Part shown: in pieces, positions 29,262 to 64,000 of the stretch
Layout: every line of letters starts with the position of its first letter
How positions within the stretch are numbered: the first letter of the stretch is position 1
Notes under the pieces: model-generated
What the model was told of the DNA's origin: nothing
What the model saw: only the letters and a program-made list of their open reading frames with translations
The model's database searches: none
Made by a program: the position numbers and the translations under genes
DNA from: Rebecca billardiae RCC1528
Lineage: Eukaryota > Protista > Haptophyta
Assembly (NCBI GenBank): GCA_965240325.2
Contig: OZ251240.1
Coordinates: 806,001-870,000, forward strand
Direction: 5' to 3'
DNA: 64,000 nucleotides

Positions 29262-30850
29262 ATGGGTGTCGCGCTCGTGACGATAAGCCTGCTGGCGTCG
29301 GGCGCGGCTGCCGGCTCTTTCGAGAACTACCCCCTGTACACGATGTGCATCGCCAACCCGTCTGCGTGCACAAGCCTCACTGTGCGTGTCCCGGCTGTCG
29401 CGCGTGCGACGAGGCGCCCACGCCCATCGCGACGGCGCGGCCAACCCTGGCGCATGGCGCGCGAGCCGGCGAGCGGCCATGCCGCACATGCATGCGACGG
29501 CAATCGGCATGCGCTGCCGCGAGGAGTGATGACGCGCTCGCCGCACGGTCGCCTGGCCCACCATGTGCGACTCGCGACGCGCGCCGTCGGCACGTGCGCA
29601 GGTGGACACGTCAGCCCTCACGGGCACGATTCCAACTTACATCGGGACGCTGTTCAACCTTAATGTTCTGTACGCGCACGGCGCGCCGCGCGTGGGGGCA
29701 GCCAGCCAGCCAGCCAGCCAGTGAGCACGCAGCGGCGATAGGACGCGCACCCGTGCCAGACTGCACGTGTCCTACTGTCCTCTGCCGACCAACCAACCGG
29801 AGGATGGATGGCAGTGGGCAGCCGCTGAGAAGCCAGACGGCCACAGCAGCGCTCGCGCCGTGCTCGTCTGCACGCAGTCGTGCGGTCGGCTGGCAGTAGG
29901 CAGCTGCGACGAATGGGAAGCGTGCGCTGACGCGGCTTGCCAGTCCTTACCTGCCCACTGTGTTCGCACGCCACGCGCTGTGCAGGCTGATGCAGTTTAA
30001 CTCGTTGTCTGGCACCCTTCCAAGTGAGTTCGGCCTCTTGACGGCTATGACGAGCATGTACGCGCGACCGCCCTTGGCGCGACCATCACCGAGAGCCTGC
30101 CAGGGGTACTACTGGTGGTTGTGCTACATATTCTCGCCAGCCACGCGCGCGCACATCGCAGCGCTCGCCCTGCCGAGCCTGACTGACCGCCCACTCACGT
30201 GCTATGCGCTTGTGCACGCCACCACGCGCTGCGCAGGTCTTTGAACTTCAACTCGTTCTCTGGCACCCTTCCAAGTGAGATCGGCCTCATGACGGCTCTG
30301 TCGTTCATGTACGCGCGACCATCACCGAGCGCGGGCCAGGGGTGCTGCTGGTGGTGGTGCTACATATTCTAATATATTCTTGCCAGCCACGCAAGCGCGC
30401 AGCGAGGCGCTCACCACCCTGCCGAGCCTGACCGCCCACTCGTGTGCTGTGCGTTTGTGCACGCCACCACGCGCTGCGCAGGGATGTGTCCACCAACTCG
30501 TTCTCTGGCACCCTTCCAAGTGAGATCGGCCTCATGACGGCTCTGGGTCTAAATCAAATGTACGCGCGGCCGGAGGGATAGGCGGGGCCGAGAGGCGGCT
30601 GCGCTCGTGCATGAGCCTGTCCTTGCGTGCCCCTGGCGATCCGACGTCGCGTCACGCTTGCCATGCCCGCCGCTGACGCTGCCACGTGTTCGCCTGTGCC
30701 TTCACCCCGTCACCGCGCATTGGTACCATCGACACTTGCTTGCAGGGATGTCTCCTCCACGCAGATGTGGCACCCGGGTGGCACGCACGGCTATCCTGCC
30801 GTCACGCCGGCGACGCTCCCAGACGCACCGTCGCCGCCGCCCTCACCCAC

Positions 30851-30892
<42 letters not shown>

Positions 30893-31250
30893 TTCGCCTC
30901 CTCCCTCGCCGCCGCCGCCGCCGCCACCGTCGCCACCACCGTCGCCGCCGCCCCTGCCGCCACCCGACTACTGCGTGGATCGTCCCCTCTTCTGCTTTGG
31001 GGTGTGTGCGCGACTGCCCTGCGTGCGCTCTGCTGGCCCCGCCCTGCCTGTGCGCCATGCGCCCAGCGTTCCAGGCGCGTGCTTGCACTGCGCGCCCGTT
31101 GACGCGCGCCTTCGCCCCCTGCTCCGTCCCACTGCCGCGCCCACCGACGTGCAGGTTGGGCTGGCCGCGCGCGATGTCGTGTCGACCACGTTCACTCGAC
31201 TTCTGTGCAAGACCACCTTCCTGCTGGGCGGCGCAGCGTGCGCACCTTGA
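29262..31250 (+). CDS. Small secreted LRR protein with one-LRR-per-exon structure and Ser/Pro stalk; exons 29262-29381, 29602-29669, 29986-30057, 30237-30308, 30482-30559, 30746-31250 (a further 3' intron is possible)
   Basis: Signal peptide MGVALVTISLLASGAAA; Cys cap CIANPSACTSL; LRRs LTGTIPTYIG, NSLSGTLPSEFG and NSFSGTLPSEIG x2; all introns GT-AG; then SPPP repeats. Confidence 0.8.
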
Positions 31251-43516: not shown

Positions 43517-44504
43517 TCATCAGCATGCTAGAGTAAGCAGTAATATATATATATATATGTATGTATGTATGCATGTATGTATGTATGTATGTATATGTAT
43601 ATATATGTATATATATTCACTAACAGCTTATTACTGCTGAGACGTACGACTACTGAATATATATATATGTATATATCATAATCTGATGATGACTTCGAGA
43701 CTGTCCGTCAGATATGGCTAGCGAGTCATCGGCGGACGGTTGGTCGGAGGCTTCGCCGCGTCGCCGGGCCCGGGGTCAAGTCAGCTCCGCCCGCACTGCC
43801 AGCCACGCTGACCAGTGGCAGTAGTACGCACTACGCCAGTAGTGACGTCGCAGCCCACGCCCCGACGGCTCGCGCGCGCGCCGATTACCGCGGTTACGGT
43901 CGCGCGCCCTCCAATCCTCCATGATGCGCTCGCGTTTAACATCGTCATGCTACGCAATTGGCAAGCCGCCCGCGCACCCTGCATGATTAGTGCATGCGCT
44001 TGAGCTCGGCGTCGTCCGAACTTAGAAATGCAGCTGCCACCGTCAGCTTCGATGGGCATCGATGGCGGCAACAGCATCGTGCTTGACTCTGGCATGGTGC
44101 TGCTGCCAGGTCTCAGCAACTTGAACTGGTGTGAGCTTTGGTTGGACGGGCGGGCGGCGGGCACCGCCGAAGGGCAAGCACGACGGCGGCGCCGCGCCTA
44201 GTGGGGTCAGAGCTCCGACCGTTACACTCCCGAGTGACACAATCTCCCGAGCGAAATGTCGAAATCGACACTGAGCCCAAATCTCATGTCGATCAAACTA
44301 CGTCATCGTCGCTCATCCTACTCCTAGGCAGCTCCTCACCGCACTTTCAAATAGCTTATTACAGCTAATTAGCGCCATCAAATCGCGCGTAACGATATCG
44401 TTATACCCTGCGTTTACGGCCAGGTGACGGCCGTCCACTTACGTAGTCGAATTGTGCTGGACGTGCGCCCGTTTTGTGCGAGTGCATGTCTAAAGCCGCT
44501 CGTC

Positions 44505-45144
<640 letters not shown>

Positions 45145-45518
45145 CATATAATTAAAAACAATATGAATATTCCGCGGGTAGCTATGCATCTGAACATATC
45201 ACTAACGACTACAGTGAAAATAAACGCTAACGCGCGCGCCTGCACTGCCCTCTGGGCGTGCCGGCAGTTGCGCAACGCGGCACCATCACTCAGCCATCAG
45301 CATCGTTACAGAATACAGCAGTACATCAAGAACGGCAGAGCCGTGAGCCGTGCGCATGAGTCAATACTGACTGAGTGCTGATGACATGAGTTAGTGATGA
45401 GAGCGGGCGGCGCGGCCGCGCGAGCGGCCGCGCGCCACCAGCCAGGCAGCCACTAAGCTAGTGGCGTAGTGCGCGCCGCACGATAAGACCAAAAACTACC
45501 GATGATGAAAGAAAAGTC

Positions 45519-45579
<61 letters not shown>
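45519..45579. repeat. (TA)n microsatellite
   Basis: Directly visible. Confidence 0.97.
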
Positions 45580-45580
<1 letters not shown>

Positions 45581-45795
45581 CATCAGAGCTGCTAATAATA
45601 ACAACAACAGTCGTCGTAGTATCATCATCAGGCGCTCTAGAATAAATTTAAATGCGCATATATGCGCGTAAGACTAGACTGCGGAGGATCGCGCAATAAT
45701 CTGATGCTGAGGCGACGACACATAAGCCTGGCTTGATGAGCTAGAACCGGGTACGAGTAAGCTATACATCATGATCATCAGTACGATGATGATTG

Positions 45796-47020
45796 TCAAC
45801 TGCCAAAGAGGAAGTTGCACGCACCGCCGATGCCGCGCAGCTGGAAGAGCACGGGCTCGACAAATACCTCGAAGGCCCAGTCGCGCCACATCTCCGGGAG
45901 AGCCCTGAGCACCACGTCCAGCACGAGCTGGATGAGCACGATGCCTGGCTCGACCACCGCCACCTTGAAGGCCATCTCGTAGCCCCACGCGAGCATGATC
46001 TCGTCGCGCCACAGGTTGGGGTTGCGGATGCTCACCTCCACCGATGCCGTGCCGAAGATCGAGAACATGAGGATGAGCACGCCAAGCGCCGCCATCAGGG
46101 CGATGTTGATCACCCATATGAGCCTGTTCTTCCACCTCTTGGGCTTGTTCGCCCACCACGTCGCGTCTTGCAGCTCGAGCATCGACAGCCGCAGCCGCTC
46201 GTGCACCTCCGTCGGCGTCGGCTCGTGCGCGCTGCTGCGGTCTGGGCGGTCGGCGGGTCGGCGGTCGCGATGGTGCGCGGCGGCGTGGTACGCGGCGACG
46301 GCCTCGCGCGTCGCCACGTTCGGCTCCGCCACCACCTCGTCCACCGCGATCGGGTGCCCGTCGGGGAAGGGCGAGCGCCTGTACGCGACCTCGACCATCT
46401 TGACAGCCTCGTACTCGTCGTCCCGCGCGTGCACGTGGTACTGCTCGAGCACCTCCTCGTGGCTGCGCGGCTCGGCGCGGTACACCACCTCGGCCTGGAC
46501 GAAGCGCAGGTCCGGGATCGGGTGCGACACCTCGACCACGGTGATGTGCTCCTCCACCATAGCCTCCTGGTGGAACTCGGGGCGCACGCGGCCGCCAAAC
46601 ATCTCGGCGACGATGGACGGCCGGTTGGCGTGCGGCACGGCCGCGAGCGCCTCGGCGCGCACGACGCCGGTGACGTAGAAGCCGACGAGCTGGCCAAAGT
46701 CCGTCTGGATTGCAACGAGGGCCTGCTCGGGCATGGCGATCGAGAGGTCCGGCCTCGTCGCCAGCGCGCCGGCCGCGGCGTTCGCGTTGCCCGTGCCGGG
46801 CATCGCCGGCACGAGCGCAGCCGCGGGCGCATCGTCCGGGTGCGGGTCGACCAACTTGACCGACTCGGGGCGGACGTACCGCACGGTCGGGCGCGAGAGG
46901 TCGACCACGCCACCGGTCAGCTCGGCGATGTTCTTAGCCACGTCCACGGTCGACATCATGCGCTGCAGGTTCGCCGCCTGGAGGCTCACGGCCGACGCGC
47001 TGCGCTTGAGCCCAACGCCG

Positions 47021-47051
<31 letters not shown>

Positions 47052-50000
47052 TCACACCCTCGCGCGCACCCGCCGCCTGCTCCGCACTCCACGCGCGCCC
47101 GAGAGGCGGCGCAGAAATCGGTGCCTTGCGGCCGGCCGGCACAGCAGACGACGGCCCGCTCGCGCCACCCAAGCCGCTGGGCCCCTGCTCTCGGCCTGAG
47201 CCGATCTTGTCTGCCGCTGCGCGCGTGCCGCGCCGCTCGGTGAGACGCTTCACGCGCCGCTCAACGTCAAGCCCGCGCTCGCGCTCCGCCTTGGTGTCGA
47301 GCAGGCTGCTGCGCTTCGCCGCCCAGCGCCACAGCCGCTCGAGGAAGAGGCTCTCGTACGGGTAGCCAGCGAGCAGCCCGATCGCCACCGCGACGAGCAA
47401 CTGCGCGGCGCCCTCGTTGCCCTCCGTGCCGAGGAAGAGCGCCATCACGAACAGCTCCATCAGCAGCACGTTGGCCTGCACCGTCAGCTTCTGCTTGGCG
47501 GTGATCGGATCGCCCGGCAGCCGGACCAGCCACGCACTGAGCGTCGACTTCTCGAGCACGCCGCTGCCAAAAGCCCACAGCCGGGAGCGCGCGGCGCGCT
47601 GCTTCCACGCCGGCACGCCCGGGTCGGTCTCAATCTGCCGGTCGATGCGGTGCGCGAGCGCGAACAGCGCAAAGTAGACGCCAAACAGGCCACACACGCA
47701 GCCGACGCCCCAGTAGTTGGCGAGCAGCCGCTCGGCGACGATCACGACCACCTCGCCCGCATTGTCCGCTTCCTTCAGCTCCTTGTCCTCGGTGTCGATA
47801 GGCGCGTTGACGGTCACCGTGCCCGCGTCCTCCCCGGCGACGAGCGAGCTGACCGCCACGCCGATGGCGGCAAAGTCTGCAGAAGGGCGCGCACGCACAT
47901 TGCGCGAGGCAACGTGGAAAGTAGAACGGAGGGGACGTGAGCGCGTGTGCGGCGGTGCGGCGCTAGCTGGGCGTGCGCTTGAACGCATGCGGCGTGGAGG
48001 TGCGGGCGCGCGTACCGGTCAGGTGGTCGCACACGCACACGAGCTGGCCTGAGCTGGCGCTGATGCGCGTCTCGCAGCCCTCGGCCGACCACAGCGCGCT
48101 CGTCTCGTTCCTGCGCGCGCGCCATCGAGGGCGAGCCGGTGGGCGCGCGCGAACGCGGGCGCGAGCGGCGCGGTGAGCCGCGCGCGCTCGCGGAACAGTG
48201 GCTAGCGTGGCGCGCCGCGTGCGCACCAGAAATGGCACACAGGCGCCTCGTTGCACGCGGTGCCATAGTAGCCGTCTGCGCACGCGCACGTGCCCGCGCC
48301 GGTGCCCGCCGTTGGAGCATCGGTCGTGTTGCAGCTCCCGGCCGGCGCGGTGCACTCGGCGTCGGTCGCGCACGCCGCGCCGCCGCGCGTAGGCTGCTGC
48401 GCCAGCGGGATGGCAATCTCGACCGGGTCGTCGAGCTGGCGAATCCGAAGCGGCACGAGCTGCGCGGCGGGCAGGAGGCGCACGCTCACCACGGCCGACT
48501 GCACGCCCAGCTGCGCGCCGAGCGTGAGGCCGTCGTCGCCGTCCGCACCGCCCGCGCCGGCGCTGGAAGCGTCGGTGCTGCCGTTGGGCGTGACGTGCAC
48601 GTTGGTCTGCAGCGAGATGAGCTGCACATCCACGCCCGCGTCGAGCGCGCCGTCGCCGCCTGCGCCGGCGAAGACGCTCGCGGGCAGCGAGACACTGCCG
48701 GAGCCCCCAGGCCCGCTGATCGTCGAGTTGGCCACCGCGTCCGCAAAGTTGCGCTGCGCGCTCACGTTGACGAGGGCACCCGTCACCTCGCGCGCCGCCT
48801 CGCCGGGAAGCACGCCAACGACGAGCCCACTCGCCAGCCCAGATGTCGCCTGTGCGATCGCCGCGTTGGCTGCGTCGTCAGCGTGGCCCGTGCTGCCTCC
48901 GCCGTCGTCCTCCGACAGCGCCGACAGGCGGCGGCGCGCGGATGCAGTGCCGTTGCCGAGCGCGCGCGCGGCCAGCACGGAGTCGAGGCCGGCGAGGCAG
49001 TTGGACGCAGTCGTGTCGTCGACGCCGCTCGAATCGCGCGCGCCCGCGACAAGGCCGGCGAGCTGCAGCAGCCCCTCCGTCTGCGCGAGCGCGTCGAGTG
49101 CCTCGGGCACGGCGAGCACGGTGCGCAACGCGTTGGACACGCCCGTGCGCCCGCCCGCGTCGAGCGTGCCGTTGAGCGCGGCCTGGGTGACGCTCAGCAG
49201 CTCGCCGACGACGGCCGCCGCCTCGCCGCCGTCCTTGCTGGCGATGGTGGACACGGTGGCGTCGGCGACGGCAACGACGAGCTGAACGGCCGAGTCCACG
49301 TCGGCGACGGCGATGGCGACTGCCGCGCCCTCGAGCACGCGGCGTGCCGTCTCGGCCGACGCGTTTTGCGAGGCCTGCGGCAGCACGCGCACGGGGCGCA
49401 GCGTGCGCGCGGCGCCCTCGAACTGGTCGATCACGAGGACCGTCGCGTTGAGCGCGCCCTGCGGCAGCACGACGCGCGCGCTCTGCTCGAGCACGGGCGT
49501 GCTCGTCACGCTCTGCTCGAGCGCCGAGCCGGGCGCGACGTAGCCAAACTGGTAGCGCAGCGGCAGGTCGTCGGCCGCGTCGTCGGTCCAGCCGCTCGCG
49601 CTGAGCGCAAACGAGGTGAAGACCGGCGCCTCCTCGGGCGAGACGGCGAGCACGCCGCCGAACGGGCTGCGGTTCATCTCGAGCGCGAGCAGCGCGGTCG
49701 CGGGCTGCCCGCCGCCCGTCACCTCGAGGCTGAGCACGTACGACGCGCCGGGCGCGAGCACGGCCGAGCGGAAAACGAGCGACGGCTTGGCGTCGCCCGT
49801 GGTGGTGACGGCGCGGCTGTCGGCGAGGTCGAGCAAACCGCCGTCCACGCCGCGCGCGGGCTGCACCGCGCTGCCGACGCGCTCGGCCATGCTCCAGCGG
49901 ACGGCGAAGCTGAGGTTGCCCGTGCTTTGCAGCGCGCGCGCCTGCGCGTCGAGCTCGGCTGAGAACGAGATGGAGAGCTCCGGCCGCGTCCACTCCGAGT

Positions 50001-53000
50001 TGTACTTGGCGGCCGCGTACCTGGCGCTGAGCGTGAGCGCGGGCACGTAGTCGTTCACCAGCGTGATGGCCACGCTGGTCTGTGCGCTACGCCCATCGGC
50101 ACTCGAGACCGCGAGGGAGACGGTGTACGCGCCCACGGCGGGTAGCGACGCCGTCCGCAGCGTGAGCGTCGGCTCGTCGAGCGCCACGCCGCTCGTGGCC
50201 AGGTCGACCGCCTCGCCACCGTTCGCGCGCGCCACGGCCCAGCTGAAGGCGAGGCCGTCGGCGCTGCCCGTGTTCAGGTCAACGGAAGCGGTGCCGTCGA
50301 ACTCGAGCGCGGCGGCGGTGATGGAGAGCGTGCGGTCGCCCGAGGCGATCACCGCGCGCACCGGCTGCAGCTCAACGATCAGCGTCACAACGACGCTCGC
50401 CCTCGCGCCCGCATCCGCTGCCATCGTCGCCGTCGCTTCAAGTGTGTATGTGTACCCGGCGCGCAGCGTGTACGGCGCGAGCTCGAGCTTGGCGCGCGAT
50501 CCCGCCGCCGCGCCAAATGGCGCGGGCACGGCCGCGACCGTCATGTCGTCGGTGCGAACCGTGCTGAGCACCGACCACGCAAAGTTGATGGCCGGCGAGA
50601 GCTCGGCGGTCGGCCAGCACGACGCGAGCTCGGCCACTGCCTGCACCACCGTCGCCGCGCTCGGCCGCACGCGCAGCGTCGCCGGGCCCTGCACGCTCAA
50701 CACCGGCGCAAGCCCGCCCGAGCGGCGCACGGTGAAGCGCGCGCGCGCCGAGGCGAAGCCGAGGAACGAGCGCGCCTGCAGCAGGAAGCTGAACTGTGCG
50801 CCGACGGGCAGCGCCACGCTCAGCGTCGGCGTCGTCGTGCGCGCCACCTCGTCCGCGAGCGCGAGCGCAGAGGCCGCGGTGAGCTCGGTCGTGTCCACCG
50901 CCCACGTGTAGCGCAGCGGCACAATGCCGCCACCCGCCGAGCCGGTCGAGCGCAGCGTCACGCGCTGGCCGGGGCACGCCGAGACGGTGCTCGGCCCGGC
51001 GAGCAGCGCCGTCGGGGTTGGGCAGCCGCCGTCACACGCCTCGTCCGCCTCCAGTGGAATCTCCACCGCACCACGCGCGCAGAGCTCGTCAGGGCACGGG
51101 GTGCCGCTGCCGCGCGGCCGGATCACGTCGGCGCGCAGCCCAACGGCGTCGCCGGGCGCGATCGCCGTCTGGCTGTTGAGCAGCGCGAGCAGCGTCGTGT
51201 CATCCTGCCAGTAGCAGGCCAGCTCGGCCGACGCGCCGCCCCGGATGAGCGCCACGGTCGCGTCGTCGAGCACGATTGCGCACAGCTCAACACCGGCCAT
51301 CCCTGCGCGGTCGGTCGGCTGTGCGTCGAACTGGATGCGCAGCGCCGTCGCCTCGGCGTTGAAGGTGGCTGACTGCAGCGCGGGCGCGCGCGCGCCGGCG
51401 AGGTAGTTGAACGTGGCGTTGGCGGCGAAGCTGGGGTCGGCCTCGACGAACGAGCGGCCGTTGAGCGACACCGAGATCGGCACCGCCGTTTCGGGCAGTC
51501 CAAGAGGCGAGCGCACCACGACGCGATCCCCCGCCACGCTGAGCGGCGCGGGCGCGAGTTTTGAGCCGAAGCGCACGCGCAGCTCGCCGGCAGCCGCGCC
51601 GGGGGTCAGGTTGGTCGCGTTGAGCAGGTTGTCGAAGCCCGCGCCCGAGATGGTCACCTCAAGGCCGCCGCGCGGCAGCCCCTCGCGTGGCGAGATGGCG
51701 AGGACGCTCGGCTGCGCGTAGTACGCGACCTGGAAGCCCGCGCTCGTCGTCGTGCCTGGCGCGCCGTTGGCGAGCGAGAGCTCCAGCGAGCGCGCGCCCG
51801 CGCCGCGCTCTCCCGCCGGCGGCAGCGTGCACGCCGCGCGCACCGTCGTCGCTCCCGGCACGCCGAGCAGCAGCTCAGCCGGCGCTGCGCACGTGCCGTC
51901 GAGCATGCAGCAGAGTCCCGTGGTGGCAAGCTCGCCGCCAAAGCCAGCGCCCGTCAGGGTGACGCGCGTCCCACCGCTCAGCGCAGCGCCGACCGGCGTC
52001 ACCGCGCTCAGGCTCACGTCGCTGATGTCGTACAGCCGCACAGAGATCTCGCCAAACTCGTTGAACAGCAGGTCGCGGCCGTCGCCGTTGAGCGTGAGCC
52101 GGACCGAGTAGCGCGCGTTCGGCACGGCCTCGTCGGCGGGCACGCCGAGGCACACGGCTGTCGAGTCGTCCACGACGGTCGCGAGGCGGTAGAAGGGCGT
52201 GCCGCCGCCCTCGCGCGTGTACGCGCACGTGGCCACGCCCGCGCCCAGGTCGAGGAAGCCGCCGCCGTACAGCGTCACGGGCGCAGGGCTACTGGCGGAC
52301 GTGGCAATGGGCTCGCTGGAGGCGACCGTTGCCGAGTACATGACGAAAGTCGCCACCGAGCTGAAGTAGGAGAGGCCGTTTGGCGAGACGTGCACGAGAA
52401 TGCTCTCGACGCCCGTGCCAGAGGAGATGGGCAGCAGCGGCAGCGGGCAGCGCACCTCGCCGGACGAGCGCAGCGCTCCGGCGACGGTGACGACGTACCC
52501 GTCACCGGTGAAGCGGCACGTGAGCGCGCCCAGCTCGAAGAAGCCCGAGCCCGAGACGACCAGCGTTCGGCCCTCCACGCCGCGCGGCACGCCGGGCGGG
52601 CTGACTGCCTCCAACGTCGCGCTTGACGTGTCGAACCAGACGAACGTCGAAGTGGCCTCCTCCTCGGACGCGGCGGAGCGCACGCGCACAGAGACGGCCG
52701 GAGCGGCAACGGGCGGCGTGAGCGGCTCGCACACCACTTCAGTCGCCGTGTACGACGCCACGCCTATCTCCACCTCGGCCATGCCGCCAGAGCCGTCCGC
52801 ATACGCAAAGACGCACGCGAGCTGGGCGCCAACGAGCAGCGCAGGCTCGAGTCCGGCCGCGGCAATGGTCACTGTCGTCGCCTCGCCCACGGCCGCGCCG
52901 CCCGGGCTCGCGCCGAAGAGCACGGCCTTGGCGAGCGCTGGGAGCGGCGGGCTCGGCGGCGGGTACGGCGACTCGCGTGGCGGCGGCGGCGGGGTTGGCG

Positions 53001-56000
53001 GCGGGCTGGGTGGCGGCGGTGGGCTGGGCGGCGGCGGGCTGGGCGGAGGCGGCGGCGACGGGCTTGGCGGCGGCGGCGGGCGCGGGGGCGGCGGGCTGCT
53101 CGGCGGCGAGGGTGGGCTGGGCGGAGGCGAGCTGTACTCACACGAGCCGTCGTCGAACGTCGCCGTCGAGTCGAAGTTGAGCGCCGCGCCGTCGGTGCAG
53201 CCGGCGAATGTGAGCGCCGGCTTGTACGCGAGCTCGATGCCCAGCGCCGCGTGCAACGCCTCGAGGGTGTGCGCTCCCAGCTCGGCCGGCACATCGAGCG
53301 GCGGCCCGTCCGCCGCGCGCTGGTACACCTCGACGGCGACGCGTGCGCTGGGCGCCGAGCCAGCCCGGCCGGCAAGGATGCCCAGCACGCGCATCTGCGC
53401 GGAAGGGATGCCAGTGAGCGCCTCCGTGCCGTCGAGCAGCTCGCTGATGGCCGCGGGAGTAAGCTCCGACGTCGGCCCAGCGATGGCGTAGCCAATCAGA
53501 GAGCGGCTGCCGGGTGGAGGTGGTGGCAGCGACGGCGGCGGCGACGGCGGCGGAACGGGCGCGGGCGATGGCGGGAACGGCGGCGGCAGGGGCTCGGTGC
53601 GCGGCGGTGGCGGCGGCGAGGGCGGTGGCAGGGGCGAGGGCGGCGGTGTGGGCGGAGGTGGCGGCGGCGATGGAGAGGGTGGCGGTGGATACGGAGGAGG
53701 GCTCGGCGGCGGCGGTGATGGTGGCGGCGATGGCGGCGGGCTGGGCGGTGGCGGCGGGCTTGGTGGCGGGTTCGGCGGGCTGGATGGTGGTGGACTGGGC
53801 GGTGGAGATGGCGGGGCGCTGGGCGGCGGGGATGGTGGCGGCGATGGTGGTGACGGCGGAGGGAACGGCTCGGCACGCGGAGGGGGCGGTGCCGAGGGAG
53901 GCGGGGGAGGCGACGGCGGCGGCGTTGGCGGCGGCGGTGGTGGGAAGAGCGGCGGTGGAGGCGGCTGAGGAGGCGAGCTCGGCGGTGGCGACGGCTGCGG
54001 TGAGGGTGGTGGCGGCGGCGGCGGCGAGGGCGGCGGTGGGAGCGGCGGTGGGGATGGCGGGGGAGTCGGTGGTGCACGCGGCGGCGGCAGACTCGGCGGT
54101 GGGCTTGGCGGCGGCCTCGGCGGCGGGCTTGGAGGTGACGATGGCGGAGGGCTGGGGGGTGGCGACGGCGGTGGCGGCGGCTCAAAGTAGACGCATCCGG
54201 ATGGCTCGGGCTCAAAGGTGGCGCTCGAGTCGTAGTTGGTCGCATTGGCGTCGCGGCATCCCTCGTACAGCAGCGTGGGCGCCGCTGCGAGCTCGATACC
54301 CAGCTCTTTGCTCAGATCCTCCACATTCGCGACGGCGAGCGTTGCGCCCACGTCCACCTGCGGCACGGACGCGGGCTGGTACGCGCTCAGTACCACCTTG
54401 ACCGAGGCTGGCGTCACGGCCTCGACGCGCCACTGCTCGGCCGGGATGCCCGTGGTGCGCGCCATGCCCGACTTGAGCTCGTTCTTCACGACCTCGTTGA
54501 TGTCGTCCGCGGTGCCCGGCAGCGCGAGGCCGACGTACGTTGTCGTGCCCGGCGGCGGTGGCGGCGGTGCGGGCGGCGGCGCGGGTGGTGGCGGTGGCGG
54601 CGGCGAGGGCGGGCTGGGCGGCGGATAGGGCTCGACGCGCGGGGGCGGCGGGGGCAAGTTGGGCGGTGGTGGTGCGCTCGGTGGCAAAGGCGGTGGAGTC
54701 GAGGGTGGGGGAGGCGAGGGAGAGGGCGGCGGCGGCTGCGGTGGCGACGAGGGAGGTGATGACGGCGGTGATGGCGGCGGTGACGGCGGCAGCAATGGCG
54801 GAGGGGCTGGTGGCGGGCTCGGTGGCGGCAATGGTGGCGGCGGGCTGGGCGGTGGCGATGGCGGCGGCGGTGGTGGTGGGCTGGGCGGTGGCGACGGTGG
54901 CGGCGGGCTGGGCGGCGGTGATGGCGGCGGCGACGGCGGCGGGCTCGGCGGCGGTGATGGCGGCGGCGGGCTGGGCGGCGGTGATGGCGGCGGCGACGGC
55001 GGCGGGCTCGGTGGCGGCGATGGCGGCGGCGGGCTGGGCGGTGGCGATGGCGGCGGCGGTGGTGGTGGGCTGGGCGGTGGCGACGGTGGCGGCGGGCTGG
55101 GCGGCGGTGATGGCGGCGGCGACGGCGGCGGGCTCGGCGGCGGTGATGGCGGCGGCGGGCTGGGCGGCGGTGATGGCGGCGGCGATGGTGGTGGGCTGGG
55201 CGGTGGCGACGGTGGCGGCGGGCTCGGCGGCGGTGATGGCGGCGGCAACGGCGGCGGGCTCGGTGGCGGCGACGGCGGCGGCGGGCTGGGCGGTGGTGAT
55301 GGCGGCGGCGATGGTGGTGGGCTGGGCGGTGGGCGTGGTGGTGGCGGGCTGGGCGGCGGGCTGGGCGGCGGGCTGGGCGGCGGGCTGGGCGGCGGGCCGG
55401 GTGGAGGTGGGCTCGGTGGTGGCGAGGGTGGTGGTGTCGGTGGCGGGCTGGGCGGCGGGCTTGGAGGCGGAGGGCTTGGTGGCGGCAAAGGAGGCGGGGG
55501 CGGAGGTGGACTCGGTGGTGGGCTGGGCGGCGGCGGGCTCGGCGGCGGCGACGGCTGTGGCGACGGCGGTGGGCGCGGTGGCGGCGACGGCGGCGGCGGG
55601 CTGGGCGGTGGCGATGGCGGCGGCGATGGTGGTGGGCTGGGCGGTGGCGACGGTGGCGGCGGGCTCGGCGGTGGTGGTGACGGCGGCGGGCTGGGCGGTG
55701 GCGATGGCGGCGGCGATGGTGGTGGGCTGGGCGGTGGCGACGGTGGCGGCGGGCTCGGCGGCGGTGGTGACGGCGGCGGGCTGGGCGGTGGCGATGGCGG
55801 CGGCGATGGTGGTGGGCTGGGCGGTGGCGACGGTGGCGGCGGGCTCGGCGGCGGTGGTGACGGCGGCGGGCTGGGCGGTGGCGATGGCGGCGGCGATGGT
55901 GGTGGGCTGGGCGGTGGCGACGGTGGCGGCGGGCTCGGCGGCGGTGGTGACGGCGGCGGGCTGGGCGGTGGCGATGGCGGCGGCGATGGTGGTGGGCTGG

Positions 56001-59000
56001 GCGGTGGCGACGGTGGCGGCGGGCTCGGCGGCGGTGGTGACGGCGGCGGGCTGGGCGGTGGCGATGGCGGCGGCGATGGTGGTGGGCTGGGCGGTGGCGA
56101 CGGTGGCGGCGGGCTCGGCGGCGGTGGTGACGGCGGCGGGCTGGGCGGTGGCGATGGCGGCGGCGATGGTGGTGGGCTGGGCGGTGGCGACGGTGGCGGC
56201 GGGCTCGGCGGCGGTGGTGACGGCGGCGGGCTGGGCGGTGGCGATGGCGGCGGCGATGGTGGTGGGCTGGGCGGTGGCGACGGTGGCGGCGGGCTCGGCG
56301 GCGGTGGTGACGGCGGCGGGCTGGGCGGTGGCGATGGCGGCGGCGATGGTGGTGGGCTGGGCGGTGGCGACGGTGGCGGCGGGCTCGGCGGCGGTGGTGA
56401 CGGCGGCGGGCTGGGCGGTGGCGATGGCGGCGGCGATGGTGGTGGGCTGGGCGGTGGCGACGGTGGCGGCGGGCTCGGCGGCGGTGGTGACGGCGGCGGG
56501 CTGGGCGGTGGCGATGGCGGCGGCGATGGTGGTGGGCTGGGCGGTGGCGACGGTGGCGGCGGGCTCGGCGGCGGTGGTGACGGCGGCGGGCTGGGCGGTG
56601 GCGATGGCGGCGGCGATGGTGGTGGGCTGGGCGGTGGCGACGGTGGCGGCGGGCTCGGCGGCGGTGGTGACGGCGGCGGGCTGGGCGGTGGCGATGGCGG
56701 CGGCGATGGTGGTGGGCTGGGCGGTGGCGACGGTGGCGGCGGGCTCGGCGGCGGTGGTGACGGCGGCGGGCTGGGCGGTGGCGATGGCGGCGGCGATGGT
56801 GGTGGGCTGGGCGGTGGCGACGGTGGCGGCGGGCTCGGCGGCGGTGGTGTCGGCGGCGGGCTGGGCGGTGGCGATGGCGGCGGCGATGGTGGTGGGCTGG
56901 GCGGTGGCGACGGTGGCGGCGGGCCCGGCGGCGGTGGTGACGGCGGCGGGCTGGGCGGTGGCGATGGCGGCGGCGATGGTGGCGGGCTGGGCGGTGGCGA
57001 CGGTGGCGGCGGGCTCGGCGGCGGTGGTGTCGGCGGCGGGCTGGGCGGTGGCGATGGCGGCGGCGATGGTGGTGGGCTGGGCGGTGGAGACGGTGGCGGT
57101 GGGCGCGGTGGCGGTGGTGACGGCGGCGGGCTGGGCGGCGGAGATGGCGGCGGCGATGGTGGTGGGCTGGGCGGTGTCGACGGTGGCGGCGGGCTCGGCG
57201 GCGGTGATGACGGCGGCGGGCTGGGCGGTGGTGATGGTGGCGGCGATGGTGGTGGGCTGGGCGGTGGCGACGGTGACGAGCAATTGGCAAGAGTGCTGAG
57301 GTCCGGGTCGAACTTGCTGTTGCTCCCGAAAGGCGTGAGTGCGCAGAACTCGCTGCCGTCGTACCAACTGAAATGCAGTGAGGGGGAGGTGGCGGGTCGG
57401 GCGGGGGACGTGTTGGCCATCCATCAACCCTGTCCGCGTGTGGGGACCGAAGATGGCGCCACCGTGCGGCAGACAGACTGCGAGGCTCCCTAGGTGGGCA
57501 CGCCACCTACGCCACCTCGAGCAGGCGAGCAGCCAGGCAGCAGGCACAACAACACAGCTGGCTGGCGCGCGTAGGCGCGAGTGCGTAGGCGCACGTACAA
57601 TGCGTTGCTGCTGCCCAAAGAGGTCAGCTGCAAAACCTCTGTTGGCATGGCGCCACCGAGCGAGTTTAAGTGAAGGTATCTGTTCCCGCGTGTGGTGGGA
57701 GTAGCGTCGGGTGGCAACACCAATACCACCAATGCGCGTCAGCTTCCACGCGGTGTGCGCGCTTGCGCCGCACGAGGGCGCTGAGAGTGATGGCATCTCT
57801 GGGGGCGGTTGTTTGACGCTCGCTGCTGCGCACACATCGACACGAGGCTCGTCATTGCGCCCACTTCCGAAGGGATGCTCCCTGTGAGCGAGTTGGAGTA
57901 GAGAAACCTGTTCCCGCGTGTGGTGGGAGTAGCGTCGGGTGGCAACACCAATACCATCAATGCGCGTCAGCTTCCACGCGGTGTGCGCGCTTGCGCCACA
58001 CGAGGGCGCTGAGAGTGATGGCATCTCTGGGAGCGGTTGTTTGACGCTCGCTTCTGCGCACACATCGACGTGAGGCTCGTCATTGCGCCGACTACAGAGG
58101 GGATGTTCCCTGTGAGCAAGTTGGAGTAGACGGACCTGTTCACTCGTGTGGTGGGAGTAGCGCCGGGCAGCAACACCAAGATGCACGTCAGCTTCCATGC
58201 GGTGTGCTTGCGCCACACGTGGGTGGGGGAGAGTGAAGCGATCTCTGGGGGCGGGTGGGGCTAGTTGCTGCGCGCACAGGTACCGCAGGCTCGTCAGTGC
58301 GCCCACTTCAGAAGGGATGCTCCCTGTGAGCGAGTTGGAGTGGAGGTACCTGTTTACGCGTGTGGTGGGAGTAGCGTCGGGCGGCAACACCAATATGCAC
58401 GTCAGCTTCCATGCGGTGTGCATGCGCCACACGTGGATGGGGGAGAGTGAAGCGATCTCTGGAGGCGGGTGGGGCTAGTTGCTGCGCACACATGAACAGC
58501 AAGCTCGTCCTTGCGCCCACTTCAGAGGGGATGCTCCCTGTGAGCGAGTTGGAGGAAGATTGCCTGTTTACGCGTGTGGTGGGAGTAGCGTCGGGCAGCA
58601 ACGCCAAGATGCACGTCAGCTTCCATGTGGTGTGCATGCGCCACGCGTGGGTGGGGGAGAGTGAAGCGATCTCTGGGGGGGCGGGTGGGGCTAGTTGCTG
58701 CGCACACAAATCAGTGAGGCTCGTCATTGCGCCCACTTCAGAAGGGATGCTCCCTGTGAGCGAGTTGGAGGAGACGGACCTGTTCACGCGTGTGGTGGGA
58801 GTAGCGTCGGGTGGCAACACCAATATGCACGTCAGCTTCCATGCGGTGTGCATGCGCCACGCGTGGGTGGGGGAGAGTGAGGCGATCCAGGGGGGCGGGT
58901 GGGGCTAGTTGCTGCGCGCACAGGAACCGCAAGCTCGTCAATGCGCCCACTTCAGACGGGAGGCTGCCTGTGAGCAAGTTGTATTGGACAGCCCTGTTCA

Positions 59001-62000
59001 CGCGTGTGGTGGGAGTAGCGTCGGGCAGCAACACCAATACTATCAATGCAACGCCAGCTTCCAGCGCATGCACCACGAGGGGGGGGGGGGGGGGGGGGGT
59101 CTCGGGGGCGGTTGGTGCTCGCTGCTGCGCGCACAGGTTCGTCAAGCTCGTCAGTGCGCCCACTTCAAAGGGGAGGCTGCCTGTGAGCGAGTTGAGTTCA
59201 AGAGTCCTGTTCACGCGTGTGGTGGGAGTAGCGCCGGGCAGCAACACCAAGATGCACGTCAGCTTCCATGCGGTGTGCATGCGCCACGCGTGGGTGGGGG
59301 AGAGTGAGGCGATCCAGGGGGGCGTGTGGGGCTAGTTGCTGCGCGCACAGGTACCGCAAGCCCGTCAATGCGCCCACTTCGGAGGGGAGGCTGCCTGTGA
59401 GCGAGTTGGATTGGACAGCCCTGTTCACGCGTGTGGTGGGAGTAGCGTCGGGCAGCAACACCAATATGCACGTCAGCTTCCATGCGGTGTGCATGCGCCA
59501 CGCGTGGGTGGGGGGCCGGAGAGTGCTGACATCTCTGGGAGCGATTGGTGCTGCTCACTGCTGCGCGTACATCCATGTGAGGCTCGTCATTGCACCAACT
59601 TCGGAGGGGAGGCTGCCTGTGAGCGAGTTGGAGTAGAGGTACCTGTTCACGCGTGTGGTGGGAGTAGCGCCGGGCAGCCGTCAGCTTCAACGCGGTGTGC
59701 ATGCGCCACACGTGGGTGGGGGGCAGTGCAATGCCATCTCTGGGGGCGGTTGGTGCTCGCTGCTGTACGCACAATACCTCCAAGCCCGTCATTGTGCCCA
59801 CTTCAGAAGGGATGCTGCCTGTGAGCGAGTTGGAGTAGAGGTACCTGTTCATGCGTGTGGTGGGAGTAGCGTCGGGCAGCAACACCAATATGCACGTCAG
59901 CTTGAATGTGGTGTGCATGCGCCACGCGTGGGTGGGGGAGAGTGAGGCGATCTCTAGGGGTGGGTGGGGCTAGTTGCTGCGCACACAGTATCTCCAAGCT
60001 CGCCACCGCGCCCACTTCAGAGGGGAGGCTCCCTGTGAGCAAGTTGGAGGAGACGGACCTGTTCACGCGTGTGGTGGGAGTAGCGTCGGGCAGCAACACC
60101 AATATGCACGTCAGATTCCACACTGTGTGTGTGCGTGCGCCACGCGTGGGTGGGGGAGAGTGAAGCGATCTCTGGGGGCGGGTGGAGCTCGCTGCTGTGC
60201 GCACAATTGCCGCAAGCTCGTCATCGCGCCCACTGCAGGAGGGATGCTCCCTGTGAGCGAGTTGGATACAGATTGCCTGTTTACGTGTGTGGTGGGAGTA
60301 GCGTCGGGCAGCAACACCAATATGCACGTCAGCTTCCATGCGGTGTGCATGCGCCACACGTGGGTGGGGGAGAGTGACGCGATCTCTGGGGGCGGGTGGG
60401 GCTAGTTGCTGCGCGCACAGGTACTGCAAGCTCGTCATTGCGCCCACTTCAGAGGGGAGGCTGCCTGCGAGCGAGTTGTGTTGGACAGCCCTGTTCACGC
60501 GTGTGGTGGGAGTAGCGTCGGGCAGCACCAATAATACCAATGCACGTCAGCTTCCATGCAGTGTGTGTGCTTGCGCCACACGTGGGTGGGGGAGAGTGAA
60601 GCGATCTCTAGGGGTGGTTGTTTGACGCTCGCCGCTGCGCGCACATCATCGTGAGGCTTGCCATTGCGCCCACTTCCGAAGGGATGCTCCCTGTGAGAGA
60701 GTTCCCGTCGAGAAACCTGTCACCAGGCAGCAGCAGGAGGGGGAAATGCCATCAGTCAAGGCAGAGGTGGCCAGATCCACAGGTGGCGCGCAAACTGCGT
60801 ATGCAGCGCAGAGGACTGGGGAGCGCATCGTACATTGACGGCACATTCGCCATGTAGCCGATCTCGGTGGGTATCGTGCCTGTCTTGCCAACAGAGCGGT
60901 ATGAGCTGCACTCGGCCGTATCCAAGCGGGCAGCGCACAAAGCATGATGACGCGCAGGGCAGGCCAGCCAGAGCAGGCGGTTTGTAAGCGCAACGACGCT
61001 GCGCGCGCGCGCGCGCGTGGAGGGGAAGAGGTTGCTCTGCAGTGCTGCGGCAGCCACGCACATGCTGTTTGTCATGCTGTTGCACGCCGGCTCGTTGAAT
61101 GTGCCCGAGTCTGGGAAGCACTGGGGGTAGTCCCCCAGCATCGCATCGCGCAGGCTGGATGACGTGGCGGTCTCGACCTGGGCGAAAAGCGCATATGAGA
61201 TGAGCGTTGCTTTCACGAGCGGCACGTGGCTCGTGCGCGAGGTCGGCCGCCGAGAAAGGCCGGGCGAGGAGACACGCCGACACTGGACCACGTGATGGTA
61301 GAAGAAGGTCAGCAGAAGCCATGCGACGAGCACGCACAGGCAACCAACAATGACCAGCACGTGCCGGGGTGAGAGAGACGTCTGCACCTTGATCATCGCA
61401 CCGACGTGAACAGGCATGCCCACGAGCTCGTGCGACCACGGCGCGTTGATCTTGTGCTCCGTCACCATCGTGTCGGCTGGCGTGCCCGTGAGCGCGTGCG
61501 GCGGCGTCGCGTCGGTCTCGTGCTGCATCATGAACGTGTCGGCCGGCGTGCCCGTGAGCGCGTGCGGCGGCGTCGTGTCGGTCTTGTGCTCCATCACCAT
61601 CGTGTCGGCCGGCATGCCCGTGAGCGCGTGCGGCGGCGGCGCGTTGGTGTCGCGCTGCATCATGAACGTGTCGGCCGGCATGCCCGTGAGCGCGTGCGGC
61701 GGCGGCGCGTTGGTCTCGTGCTGCATCATGAACGTGTCGGCCGGCATGCCCGTGAGCGCGTGCGGCGGCGGCGCGTTGGTCTCGTGCTGCATCATGAACG
61801 TGTCGGCCGGCGTGCCCGTGAGCGCGTGCGGCGGCGGCGCGTTGGTCTCGTGCTGCATCATGAGCATGTCGGCCGGCATGCCCGTGAGCGCGTGCGGCGG
61901 CGGCGCGTTGGTCTTGTGCTCCGTCACCAGCGTGTCGGCCGGCATGCCCGTGAGCGCGTGCGGCAGCGGCGCGTCGGTGTTGCGCTGCATCATGAACGTG

Positions 62001-64000
62001 TCGGCGGGCATGCCCGTGAGCGCGTGCGGCGTCGGCGCGTCGGTCTCGTGCTGCATCATGAACGTGTCGGCCGGCATGCCCGTGAGCGCGTGCGGCGGCG
62101 GCGCGTCGGTCTTATGCTCCGTCACCAGCGTGTCGGCCGGCATGCCCGTGAGCGCGTGCGGCGGCGGCGCGTTGGTGTCGCGCTGCATCATGAACGTGTC
62201 GGCCGGCATGCCCGTGAGCGCGTGCGGCGGCGGCGCGTTGGTCTCGTGCTGCATCATGAACGTGTCGGCCGGCATGCCCGTGAGCGCGTGCGGCGGCGGC
62301 GCGTTGGTCTCGTGCTGCATCATGAACGTGTCGGCCGGCGTGCCCGTGAGCGCGTGCGGCGGCGGCGCGTCGGTCTTACGCTCCGTCACCAGCGTGTCGG
62401 CGGGCATGCCCGTGAGCGCGTGCGGCAGCGGCGCGTCGGTGTTGCGCTGCATCATGAACGTGTCGGCGGGCATGCCCGTGAGCGCGTGCGGCGGCGGCGC
62501 GTTGGTCTCGTGCTGCATCATGAGCATGTCGGCCGGCATGCCCGTGAGCGCGTGCGGCGGCGGCGCGTTGGTGTCGCGCTGCATCATGAACGTGTCGGCC
62601 GGCATGCCCGTGAGCGCGTGCGGCGGCGGCGCGTCGGTCTCGTGCTGCATCATGAACGTGTCGGCCGGCATGCCCGTGAGCGCGTGCGGCGGCGGCGCGT
62701 TGGTCTCGTGCTGCATCATGAACGTGTCGGCCGGCGTGCCCGTGAGCGCGTGCGGCGGCGGCGCGTTGGTGTCGCGCTGCATCATGAACGTGTCGGCCGG
62801 CATGCCCGTGAGCGCGTGCGGTGGCGGCGCGTCGGTCTCGTGCTGCATCATGAACGTGTCGGCCGGCATGCCCGTGAGCGCGTGCGGCGGCGGCGCGTTG
62901 GTCTCGTGCTGCATCATGAACGTGTCGGCCGGCGTGCCCGTGAGCGCGTGCGGCGGCGGCGCGTCGGTCTTACGCTCCGTCACCAGCGTGTCGGCCGGCA
63001 TGCCCGTGAGCGCGTGCGGCGGCGGCGCGTTGGTCTCGCGCTGCATCATGAACGTGTCGGCCGGCATGCCCGTGAGCGCGTGCGGCGGCGGCGCGTTGGT
63101 CTCGTGCTGCATCATGAACGTGTCGGCCGGCATGCCCGTGAGCGCGTGCGGCGGCGGCGCGTCGGTCTTATGCTCAGTCACCAGCATGTCGGCCGGCATG
63201 CCCGTGAGCGCGTGCGGCGGCGGCGCGTTGGTCTCGTGCTGCATCATGAACGAGTCGGCCGGCGTGCCCGTGAGCGCGTGCGGCGGCGGCGCGTTGGTCT
63301 CGTGCTGCATCATGAGCATGTCGGCCGGCGTGCCCGTGAGCGCGTGCGGCGGCGGCGCGTCGGTCTCGTGCTGCATCATGAACGTGTCGGCCGGCATGCC
63401 CGTGAGCGCGTGCGGTGGGGTCGCGTCGGTCTTGTGCTGCATCATGAACGTGTCGGCCGGCATGCCCGTGAGCGCGTGCGGCGGCGGCGCGTTGGTCTTG
63501 TGCTCCGTCACCAGCGTGTCGGCGGGCATGCCCGTGAGCGCGTGCGGCAGCGGCGCGTCGGTGTTGCGCTGCATCATGAACGTGTCGGCGGGCATGCCCG
63601 TGAGCGCGTGCGGCGTCGGCGCGTCGGTCTCGTGCTGCATCATGAACGTGTCGGCCGGCATGCCCGTGAGCGCGTGCGGCAGCGGCGCGTCGGTCTTATG
63701 CTCCGTCACCAGCGTGTCGGCCGGCATGCCCGTGAGCGCGTGCGGCGGCGGCGCGTCGGTCTTACGCTCCGTCACCAGCGTGTCGGCGGGCATGCCCGTG
63801 AGCGCGTGCGGCAGCGGCGCGTCGGTGTTGCGCTGCATCATGAACGTGTCGGCGGGCATGCCCGTGAGCGCGTGCGGCGGCGGCGCGTTGGTCTCGTGCT
63901 GCATCATGAGCATGTCGGCCGGCATGCCCGTGAGCGCGTGCGGCGGCGGCGCGTCGGTCTTACGCTCCGTCACCAGCGTGTCGGCGGGCATGCCCGTGAG
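45796..64000 (-). CDS. Giant polycystin-1-like receptor (>5000 aa; 5' end may lie beyond the window): 22-aa repeats - hydrophobic segments - Cys cap - 16 LRR exons - Ser/Pro stalk - IPT/TIG-like - REJ - EGF-like - GPS - ~5 TM
   Basis: Frame-consistent GT-AG splicing: >=64000-61062, 60905-60834, 14 x 72-nt exons, 57679-57599, 57367-48227, 48110-48016, 47876-45796. Spliced GPS CHFWNETSALWSAEGC...CVCDHLTDF; REJ-like NRSPFGGVLAVSP...FALSASGWTDD..DLPLRYQF. Confidence 0.82.
54540..57290 (-). repeat. Ser-Pro3/4 (extensin/HRGP-like) coding tract with a 90-bp (30-aa) tandem unit, perfect over ~55680-56850
   Basis: The sequence repeats with an exact 90-bp period. Confidence 0.95.
57599..60905 (-). repeat. 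LRR exon-intron cassette array: 72-nt exons at 60645-60716, 60419-60490, 60205-60276, 59987-60058, 59773-59844, 59571-59642, 59349-59420, 59135-59206, 58922-58993, 58708-58779, 58492-58563, 58278-58349, 58064-58135, 57836-57907; capped by 60834-60905 (72 nt) and 57599-57679 (81 nt)
   Basis: Each exon lies between ...CAG and GT(G/A)..., is phase 2-2, and encodes xxxxNxLxGx(I/L)PxxVGxxxxLxx. The 14 introns of 130-156 nt are mutually homologous. Confidence 0.93.
61430..64000 (-). repeat. 66-bp (22-aa) coding minisatellite, ~39 units, Met/His/Pro-rich
   Basis: MPADT(FMMQ/LVTE)(H/R)xT(N/D)APPPHALTG units in one uninterrupted frame. Confidence 0.95.

Follow-up and report, generated by a model that had tools for sequence, protein, structure and literature searches.

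A tandem array of single-repeat leucine-rich repeat exons with hypervariable ends in a predicted polycystin-1/REJ-like gene of the haptophyte Rebecca billardiae

We analysed a stretch of 64,000 nucleotides from the very GC-rich alga Rebecca billardiae RCC1528 (Haptophyta; assembly GCA_965240325.2, contig OZ251240.1, positions 806,001 to 870,000 of the forward strand), referred to below as the window and numbered from its first letter. The minus strand of the window carries, at 60716-57599, a gene segment that parses into 15 leucine-rich repeat (LRR) exons and 14 intervening introns. The codons at the exon ends vary strongly from one exon to the next, the rest of the exons and the introns vary far less, and the different parts of the repeated unit do not share one tree. 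On this evidence we consider it probable that the LRR ectodomain of a giant polycystin-1/REJ-like surface glycoprotein is made of tandem-duplicated, recombining exon-plus-intron cassettes, and that the diversity of its concave face is selected or preserved. The array as it stands is an evolutionary pattern, not a demonstrated diversification machine.

Structure of the LRR array

The original prediction, made from the letters of the window, had placed 14 cassettes at 57836-60716. The exon parse recovered all of them, and the array was found to continue beyond these coordinates into a fifteenth exon (57679-57599) and an upstream half-repeat. The fourteen strings that had been read at the exon 5' ends (FLDGN to FLYSN) and the fourteen at the 3' ends (LTM to LVS) matched the parsed exons exactly. 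The array consists of the following features.

57836..60716, minus strand: 14 tandem cassettes, each a 72-bp exon (one 24-residue plant-type LRR) plus an intron; exon parse and profile match.
60716-60645, minus strand: LRR exon 1; exon parse.
57907-57836, minus strand: LRR exon 14; exon parse.
57835-57680, minus strand: intron 14, outside the range of the original prediction, which stopped at exon 14.
57599..57679, minus strand: fifteenth, divergent LRR exon (YLHLNSLGGAMPTEV...), apparently 81 nt long with a GTACG donor in phase 2; sequence reading.
60717..60833, minus strand: intron 0, apparently 117 nt, GT..AG, phase 2, between a large upstream exon and LRR exon 1; sequence and translation.

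Exons 1-14 are each exactly 72 bp long. The 14 introns between the exons have GT-AG ends, are in phase 2 and measure 130-156 nt. Every exon is preceded by ACAG and begins with G, except exon 15, whose first base is A. Intron lengths vary by non-multiples of three and the introns contain in-frame stops, while exon length stays constant; this combination is the signature of genuine exons and introns, which would be spliced as drawn here. Tandem Repeats Finder (TRF) reported a 214-bp unit with 14 repeats at 57658-60703. With the half-repeat that closes the upstream exon included, the ectodomain totals about 16 LRRs.

The codon split by the introns is always ATG, CTG, TTG or ATA (Met, Leu or Ile). 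Because every pairing of a donor dinucleotide (AT, CT or TT) with an acceptor base (G or A) encodes one of these three residues, any junction would preserve the hydrophobic core.

The introns are not uniform and fall into about three subtypes that are 67-97% identical. Their last ~36 nt (for example 58780-58815) are nearly invariant in all 14, with a diversity of 0.00-0.09, and are more strongly conserved than mid-exon synonymous sites; our guess is that splicing signals or conversion lie behind this. The invariant intron 3' end occurs 14 times in the window, always within the array, where 0 occurrences would be expected by chance. The sole CTRAY-like branch-point candidate (CTGAC) is located ~60 nt 5' of the acceptor. 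In intron 8 (~59078-59100), part of the conserved sequence is replaced by a homopolymer of ~24 nt (poly-G on the plus strand, poly-C in the intron), which could be due to replication slippage or to a weak spot in the assembly.

Intron register and the divided beta-strand

A profile was built from the 15 exon peptides, with the consensus xxxSNSLTGSIPSEVGAMTSLxx followed by the split Leu/Met/Ile codon. Its period and consensus, LxxLxxLxLxxNxL(S/T)GxIPxxLGx, are those of the 24-residue plant-specific type of LRR. In the structure database, the best matches to the profile were ectodomains of plant LRR receptor kinases, with full-sequence E values of 1e-13 for MIK2, 7e-11 for FLS2, 1.5e-10 for GSO1 and 6e-9 for ERL1. 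Searched singly against Pfam LRR_1, a 23-residue exon gave no better than E = 0.1-0.2, a value in line with so short a query.

The alignment to the plant LRRs was in register. The conserved Asn of LxxLxLxxN falls on exon residue 5, and the Leu at the centre of the strand is encoded by the split codon. Within LxxLxxLxLxxNxLSGxIPxxLGx, exon residues 22-23 correspond to x5 and x6, the split codon to L7, and residues 1-4 to x8, L9, x10 and x11. Each strand takes two codons from the end of one exon and four from the start of the following one, so that the beta-strand divided between two exons in the original prediction was borne out by this alignment. Five of these six codons, namely the final two and three of the initial four, encode the ligand-facing x residues. 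In LRR structures, the residues at these five x positions are those that the concave beta-sheet exposes to solvent. Since the intron falls within the codon for the middle Leu of LxxLxLxxN, the variable codons come to lie at the junctions, and as a logical consequence of this layout a new neighbour would create a new binding strand.

A layout of this kind could also serve programmed diversification, in which regulated exon skipping, mutually exclusive splicing or somatic DNA rearrangement would produce many isoforms with a hybrid strand at each junction. The internal exons are all 72 bp and phase-2 symmetric, the donor and acceptor contexts are nearly identical, and Met, Leu or Ile is restored at any junction. 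Alternative splicing of LRR exons has been reported in brown-algal ROCO genes (PMC11378527). However, the germline array is intact and carries ordinary splice signals, and no docking or selector structure was found in the introns, which matched no Rfam family and showed unremarkable folding (z-scores -0.7 to +0.7). Programmed diversification therefore appears quite improbable as the origin of the pattern.

Diversity contrast and selection

Pairwise nucleotide diversity among cassettes was 0.54 in codons 1-4 and 22-23, compared with 0.138 for the remainder of the exon and 0.131 for introns. Diversity fell abruptly at both splice sites, and the five most variable of the 23 codons all lay at most three codons from a junction (chance 6/33649). 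This per-site diversity agrees with the predicted hypervariable codons at the splice junctions and homogeneous mid-exon and intron sequence, with the intron subtypes described above as a refinement. At the protein level, diversity was about three times greater at the five concave x positions (0.80) than at the seven other x positions (0.25). The concave five were the exact top five of the twelve x positions, an outcome with a chance of 1 in 792.

The proportions of nonsynonymous and synonymous differences (pN/pS) were 0.59/0.40 in the variable codons and 0.09/0.24 in the rest of the exon, with an intron distance of 0.12. Maximum-likelihood (ML) codon models gave an omega of 2.7 for the five concave codons, 2.4 for the six variable codons and 0.30 for the mid-exon. 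In the 17 intron pairs that differed by at most 8%, the adjoining 8 nt upstream differed by 43% and the 13 nt downstream by 51%, eight times the intron value. Introns 13 and 14, for example, differ at 4/156 sites, and the exon starts that follow them differ at 7/13. Variable blocks diverged 4-8 times more than introns.

Recent amplification together with relaxed constraint would offer a simpler account: the x residues would merely be unconstrained, and the remainder would be similar since the copies are young. Repeats with a constant scaffold and variable x positions are generic to LRR proteins, and intronless metagenomic LRR arrays look alike. However, unconstrained sites cannot diverge 4-8 times beyond the adjacent introns. 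The seven other x positions are equally free structurally and yet have low diversity, which argues against mere relaxed constraint, and the trees of the cassette parts are incongruent (see below), unlike the outcome of duplication alone. Relaxed constraint was judged very unlikely. Diversifying, or at least diversity-preserving, selection on the concave face is likely, if not strictly proven, and we infer its direction from these contrasts.

Mosaic cassettes and recombination

The distance matrices of the 5' block, the middle, the 3' block and the two intron halves were almost uncorrelated, with a Mantel r of -0.05 between the exon 5' and 3' end blocks. The sole linkages involved the 5' half of the downstream intron, which was correlated with the middle (r = 0.36, p = 0.01) and with the 3' block (r = 0.24, p = 0.05). 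Between 43 and 58% of informative site pairs failed the four-gamete test. The pairwise homoplasy index (PHI) test of intron(i) joined to exon(i+1) gave p = 0.0005 at every window size. With the variable sites removed, so that mid-exon and intron sites remained, it gave p = 0.001-0.013.

Each partition rejected the ML trees of the other partitions in approximately unbiased (AU) and Shimodaira-Hasegawa (SH) tests. The log-likelihood difference (delta lnL) ranged from 9 to 113, and the AU value was <0.015 in 15/15 comparisons and <0.005 in 14 of them. Trees of short partitions are noisy, and a conservative repeat was made by parametric bootstraps of the Swofford-Olsen-Waddell-Hillis (SOWH) type on intron clades with bootstrap values of at least 80, namely {2,4,7,9,10,11,12}, {7,9} and {13,14}. 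These clades were rejected by the exon 5' half (p <= 0.005), the 3' half (0.015), the middle (0.005) and the 5' half of the next exon (0.005). In the reverse test, clades formed by the four nucleotide types of the exon 5' end were rejected by the introns (delta lnL 81, p <= 0.01). The cassette parts had been predicted to differ in their trees, and in both kinds of test they did; the congruent trees that had been named beforehand as a refutation were not obtained.

Individual exons showed the same mosaic structure. The original prediction had noted from the translations that the same 5' types recur with different 3' types, and this held at the nucleotide level. Exons 4 and 10 have identical 5' blocks (13/13 nt, SVSS) with the 3' ends LEI and LTD, and exons 5 and 6 have identical 5' blocks (13/13 nt, YLYS) with the 3' ends LEV and LTW. 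All four combinations of the multi-nucleotide types SV/YL and LE/LT are present in exons 4, 5, 6 and 10. Exons 10 and 14 have 50/51 mid-exon nucleotides in common, while their flanking introns are merely 74-75% identical. Around the SVSS block that exons 4 and 10 share, the sequence is identical over a tract reaching ~31 nt into the intron on one side and ~17 nt into the exon on the other, which indicates that end blocks are sometimes copied whole. Breakpoints within the conserved blocks could not be placed precisely. As judged from these sequence comparisons, recombination between cassettes is well supported. Of the two processes proposed originally, recombination is borne out by PHI, tree tests and chimeric exons; diversifying selection stands as likely, with a marginal test for omega > 1 (see below).

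Two further analyses were set aside. A Sawyer-type test of the longest identical run flagged 34/78 pairs and was discarded, because differences cluster in the variable blocks and site permutation therefore inflates the significance of intron runs. Simple duplication of several cassettes at once was also considered, as TRF reported a 432-bp period, but the order of the 5' types fits no clean two- or four-cassette duplication.

A second gene with the same design

An unrelated gene on the opposite strand of the window shows a comparable exon structure.

29986..30553, plus strand: 72-bp LRR exons of a second, unrelated gene, split at the same phase-2 position, with variable ends and constant middles; exon parse.

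This gene (~29258-31200, plus strand) opens with what resembles a signal peptide, followed by four LRR exons that keep the split-strand register of the main array and by a Pro-rich (SPPP) tail. Its exons differ from one another at 0-4/51 sites in the middle, compared with 7-10/13 in the 5' block and 3-7/8 in the 3' block, and two neighbouring introns are 89% identical. The 3' ends of its introns (..CCACCACGCGCTGCGCAG) resemble those of the main array (..CCACCACACGCGTGAACAG). The resemblance suggests that the two genes may have a splice-region motif in common or may have acquired their exon-plus-intron units by common descent.

The second gene also bears on whether misassembly or collapse of the tandem array could have generated chimeric cassettes. 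With 80-97% identity between the 214-bp units and a ~24-nt homopolymer in intron 8, assembly errors are conceivable. Nevertheless, no two cassettes are identical, none of the 15 exons is disrupted or out of frame, their splice sites are perfect, the mosaic blocks (8-50 nt) are far under read length, and the same pattern appears in the second gene. We regard an assembly artefact as extremely doubtful.

Age of the end blocks

Identical end-block residues use identical codons. The invariant Leu21 beside the 3' block is encoded by CTC in the LT and LV types and by TTG in the others, which is a double synonymous difference. pS was highest in the variable codons (0.40), followed by the mid-exon (0.24), and both exceeded intron divergence (0.12). 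These patterns are consistent with most of the diversity being old end-block types that have been re-assorted, with conversion or recent duplication maintaining the similarity of scaffold and introns. Point replacements at an omega of ~2-3 would have been added onto the re-assorted old blocks.

A number of observations weigh against the interpretation that we favour. Much of the variable-block diversity looks old and not newly mutated. The likelihood-ratio test against omega = 1 was marginal (p = 0.028 for the five codons, 0.13 for the six), and it concerns 5-6 codons in recombining sequences. Among whole-cassette relatives (exons 2, 7 and 9), the excess of variable-codon divergence over introns was just ~2-3x, with small counts. 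Divergence is lower in the introns than at synonymous sites of the mid-exon (0.12 vs 0.24), so that the introns may be constrained or preferentially homogenised and the neutral rate underestimated. PHI for exon(i) joined to intron(i) was significant only at the 30-nt window (p = 0.017), with values of 0.18 and 0.67 at wider windows. The splicing model has as its whole basis the GT-AG ends, the constant 72-bp exons and the preserved frame. Finally, no orthologous array was found, and ongoing diversification and a static set of old end blocks are for this reason indistinguishable.

If the repeats were static and old, the end blocks would be ancient, fixed contact residues under purifying selection; scaffold and introns alone would have been homogenised, with no arms race. 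The deep synonymous divergence in the end blocks, seen in the Leu21 codons and in pS, is in keeping with this, as are the 2-3-fold excess in cassettes 2, 7 and 9 and a protein of the polycystin-1/REJ-like adhesion or sensing type, which is not an established immune receptor. However, identical end blocks are found in different contexts and all four type combinations occur, suggesting that the blocks move. The omega values of 2.4-2.7 and the presence of the same pattern in the second gene also argue against static repeats, and the recurrence may reflect an evolutionary mode shared by a family of genes rather than a single conserved interface. We consider static repeats unlikely.

In the recombining-cassette interpretation that we favour, tandem duplication of a ~214-bp exon-plus-intron unit would have enlarged the array, and the units would still swap sequence via unequal crossing-over or gene conversion. 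Such exchange would keep scaffold codons and introns alike and shuffle the short, variable blocks at the exon ends, and mosaic exons and new pairs of neighbours would result. Selection would favour, or at least preserve, diversity of the concave face. Conversions that homogenise end blocks would not persist, and replacements would accumulate in these blocks at an omega of ~2-3.

Domain context and relatives of the gene

The remainder of the gene was examined by translation and profile search, and the features below were located on both sides of the LRR array.

61413..64000, minus strand: at least 39 copies of a 66-bp, 22-residue repeat (LTGMPADTFMMQHETNAPPPHA) in an open frame that runs off the window; TRF and open reading frame (ORF).
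60834..61504, minus strand: end of the large upstream exon, with a hydrophobic segment (VLVIVGCLCVLVAWLLLTFF), a Cys-containing pre-LRR region and a half-repeat ending ...TGTIPTEIGYMANVPS plus the AT of the split codon; translation.
53002..57367, minus strand: exon after the LRRs, with a Cys-containing C-terminal cap (..WYDGSEFCALTPFGSNSKFDPDLSTLANC) and then a long (SPPP)n rod; ORF and TRF.
51427..51711, minus strand: IPT/TIG domain; PF01833, E = 2.7e-15.
49270..50589, minus strand: REJ domain; PF02010, E = 5.3e-38, profile positions 14-452 of 452.
48017..48124, minus strand: GPS autoproteolysis motif; PF01825, E = 1.6e-6, 29 bits against a cut-off of 22.5.
45799-48018, minus strand: 740-residue hydrophobic open frame after GPS; ORF.

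The order of domains is LRR, (SPPP)n rod, TIG, REJ, an EGF-like Cys pattern between the REJ domain and the GPS motif, GPS, and the hydrophobic region, with GPS preceding the first membrane span. By this predicted order the gene is a polycystin-1/REJ-like surface protein, and its LRR domain would be the part that binds a ligand. The 740-residue frame, read without intron modelling, had no Pfam match even at E <= 5, and PLAT and PKD-channel domains were not detected in it.

The rod between the LRRs and the TIG and REJ domains is an (SPPP/SPPPP)n sequence of well over 1000 residues, within which a 90-bp repeat occurs in 24.6 copies with 90% matches (55067-57275, minus strand). It resembles extensin and other hydroxyproline-rich glycoproteins. 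At the other end, the tract of 66-bp repeats shares its reading frame with both the hydrophobic segment and the LRR domain, and its GC content at third codon positions (GC3) of 0.99 makes it very probable that the 22-residue repeat is coding. The repeat contains a small internal variable block (TF/TL/ML, MM/VT, QH/ER/EH, E/K/N/D). Neither the 22-residue repeat (61413-64000) nor the end of the large upstream exon (60834-61504) had a Pfam match. Downstream of the hydrophobic frame, a stretch at ~43300-45700 is AT-richer (GC ~53%) and contains dinucleotide microsatellites, and its minus-strand translation consists of IY and SL runs. It is probably the intergenic region downstream of the receptor gene.

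A protein search with TIG plus REJ returned a single database relative, P0001, which is 34% identical over these two domains and has no LRRs. This protein of 3102 residues (L001:157-9465, a Logan contig with 70% GC) consists of many repeated Cys-containing modules followed by TIG, REJ, an EGF-like pattern, a GPS motif (HLTDFA, at the corresponding place) and membrane spans, with its REJ-EGF-GPS-TM order matching that of the R. billardiae gene. No match was obtained when metagenomes were scanned for the invariant intron 3' end. A metagenome scan with the exon motif NSLTGS[IL]PSEVG gave two contigs of 43% GC with intronless LRR arrays, which were rejected as unrelated and not orthologous. Both (L002:366-1013 and L003:875-1594) carry the same intronless LRR gene from an unrelated organism, with near-identical 24-residue repeats that vary only at x positions and that differ in number by one whole repeat (9 vs 10).

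Discussion

Arrays of this kind are already known from brown-algal candidate immune receptors, and the array of R. billardiae differs from these in intron register, protein context and lineage. In Ectocarpus and Saccharina, ROCO genes have one LRR per 72-bp phase-2 exon, with exon shuffling and positive selection on concave residues (Zambounis et al. 2012, PMC3341825; Teng et al. 2024, PMC11378527). The haptophyte array similarly has a 24-residue LRR per 72-bp exon, phase-2 symmetric introns and recombination between cassettes. Concave-residue selection, described in the brown algae, is suggested here by omega values of 2.4-2.7 with likelihood-ratio p values of 0.028 and 0.13. The brown-algal exon reads GxxPxxLxxxxxLxxLxLxxNxLx, with selected sites at 14, 16, 18 and 19 of 23 (PMC3341825, PMC11378527). 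Its strand lies whole within one exon, whereas in R. billardiae the strand is interrupted by the intron and the exon ends carry the variable codons. The ROCO products are cytosolic ROC-COR GTPases, in contrast to the REJ/GPS surface protein with a Ser-Pro rod predicted here, and Pfam detected no ROC or COR domain in the large open frames scanned. Inverted or inactivated LRR exons have been reported inside the brown-algal introns; none was seen in this array.

The plant-specific 24-residue consensus is shared with plant LRR receptor kinases and receptor-like proteins (FLS2, MIK2, ERL1; Cf-9-type R genes). In plants, the hypervariable solvent-exposed xxLxLxx residues are a classic target of diversifying selection. 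That hypervariability is described between paralogues or alleles and not between near-identical neighbouring exon-plus-intron units of one gene, and the window gene, unlike the plant receptor kinases, has no kinase. Plant 72-bp exons may be cut at the same position. Some plant LRR receptor subfamilies have one LRR per exon (PMC7496461) and mostly phase-2 introns (PMC4654520). In the literature, no statement of the exact intron register was found for plant or vertebrate LRR exons. The glycoprotein-hormone receptors (LH, FSH, TSH) have LRR exons of similar size, all phase 2, which have been taken as evidence of exon duplication (PMC11378527). Those exons and introns are old and diverged, and they show neither the homogenised introns nor the hypervariable ends of the present array.

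Polycystin-1 and the sea-urchin REJ family have the same arrangement, with LRRs at the N-terminus, a REJ domain, GPS and, after these, a hydrophobic region of several membrane passes. The LRRs of human polycystin-1, which are flanked by caps, number about two, compared with ~16 here, and in the R. billardiae gene an (SPPP)n rod and TIG take the place of the PKD repeats. Lamprey variable lymphocyte receptors likewise combine LRR modules to vary a concave binding face, but their genes are put together in somatic cells, from flanking cassettes without splice signals. The R. billardiae gene is already complete in the germline and has GT-AG introns, and nothing indicates somatic change. Near-identical tandem repeats with positively selected hypervariable binding positions and recombinational shuffling also occur in fungal NLR proteins (HET-E-type WD40, ANK, TPR). 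The fungal repeats have another fold and are contained within one exon, and introns play no part.

The main evidence for fast-changing recognition receptors in algae outside the plant and animal lineages comes from LRR arrays that have one exon per repeat and hypervariable binding residues, and the present array, with 15 intact cassettes, is an unusually clean and large example. Two of its features are undescribed for brown algae. One is its place on a surface protein of the polycystin-1/REJ type. The other is the position of the intron within the binding strand, so that recombination in an intron or in mid-exon would yield a strand absent from any parental cassette. Because the strand spans the junction, an intron crossover or exon skipping would make a strand that no single exon encodes, and a mid-exon crossover would give a mosaic exon. 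There is a small chance that regulated exon skipping or choice produces isoforms with hybrid ligand-facing strands, in which case a polycystin-like receptor would bear a combinatorial binding surface encoded at its splice junctions. If the design is common in this genome, it would point to a lineage-wide route to surface-receptor diversity.

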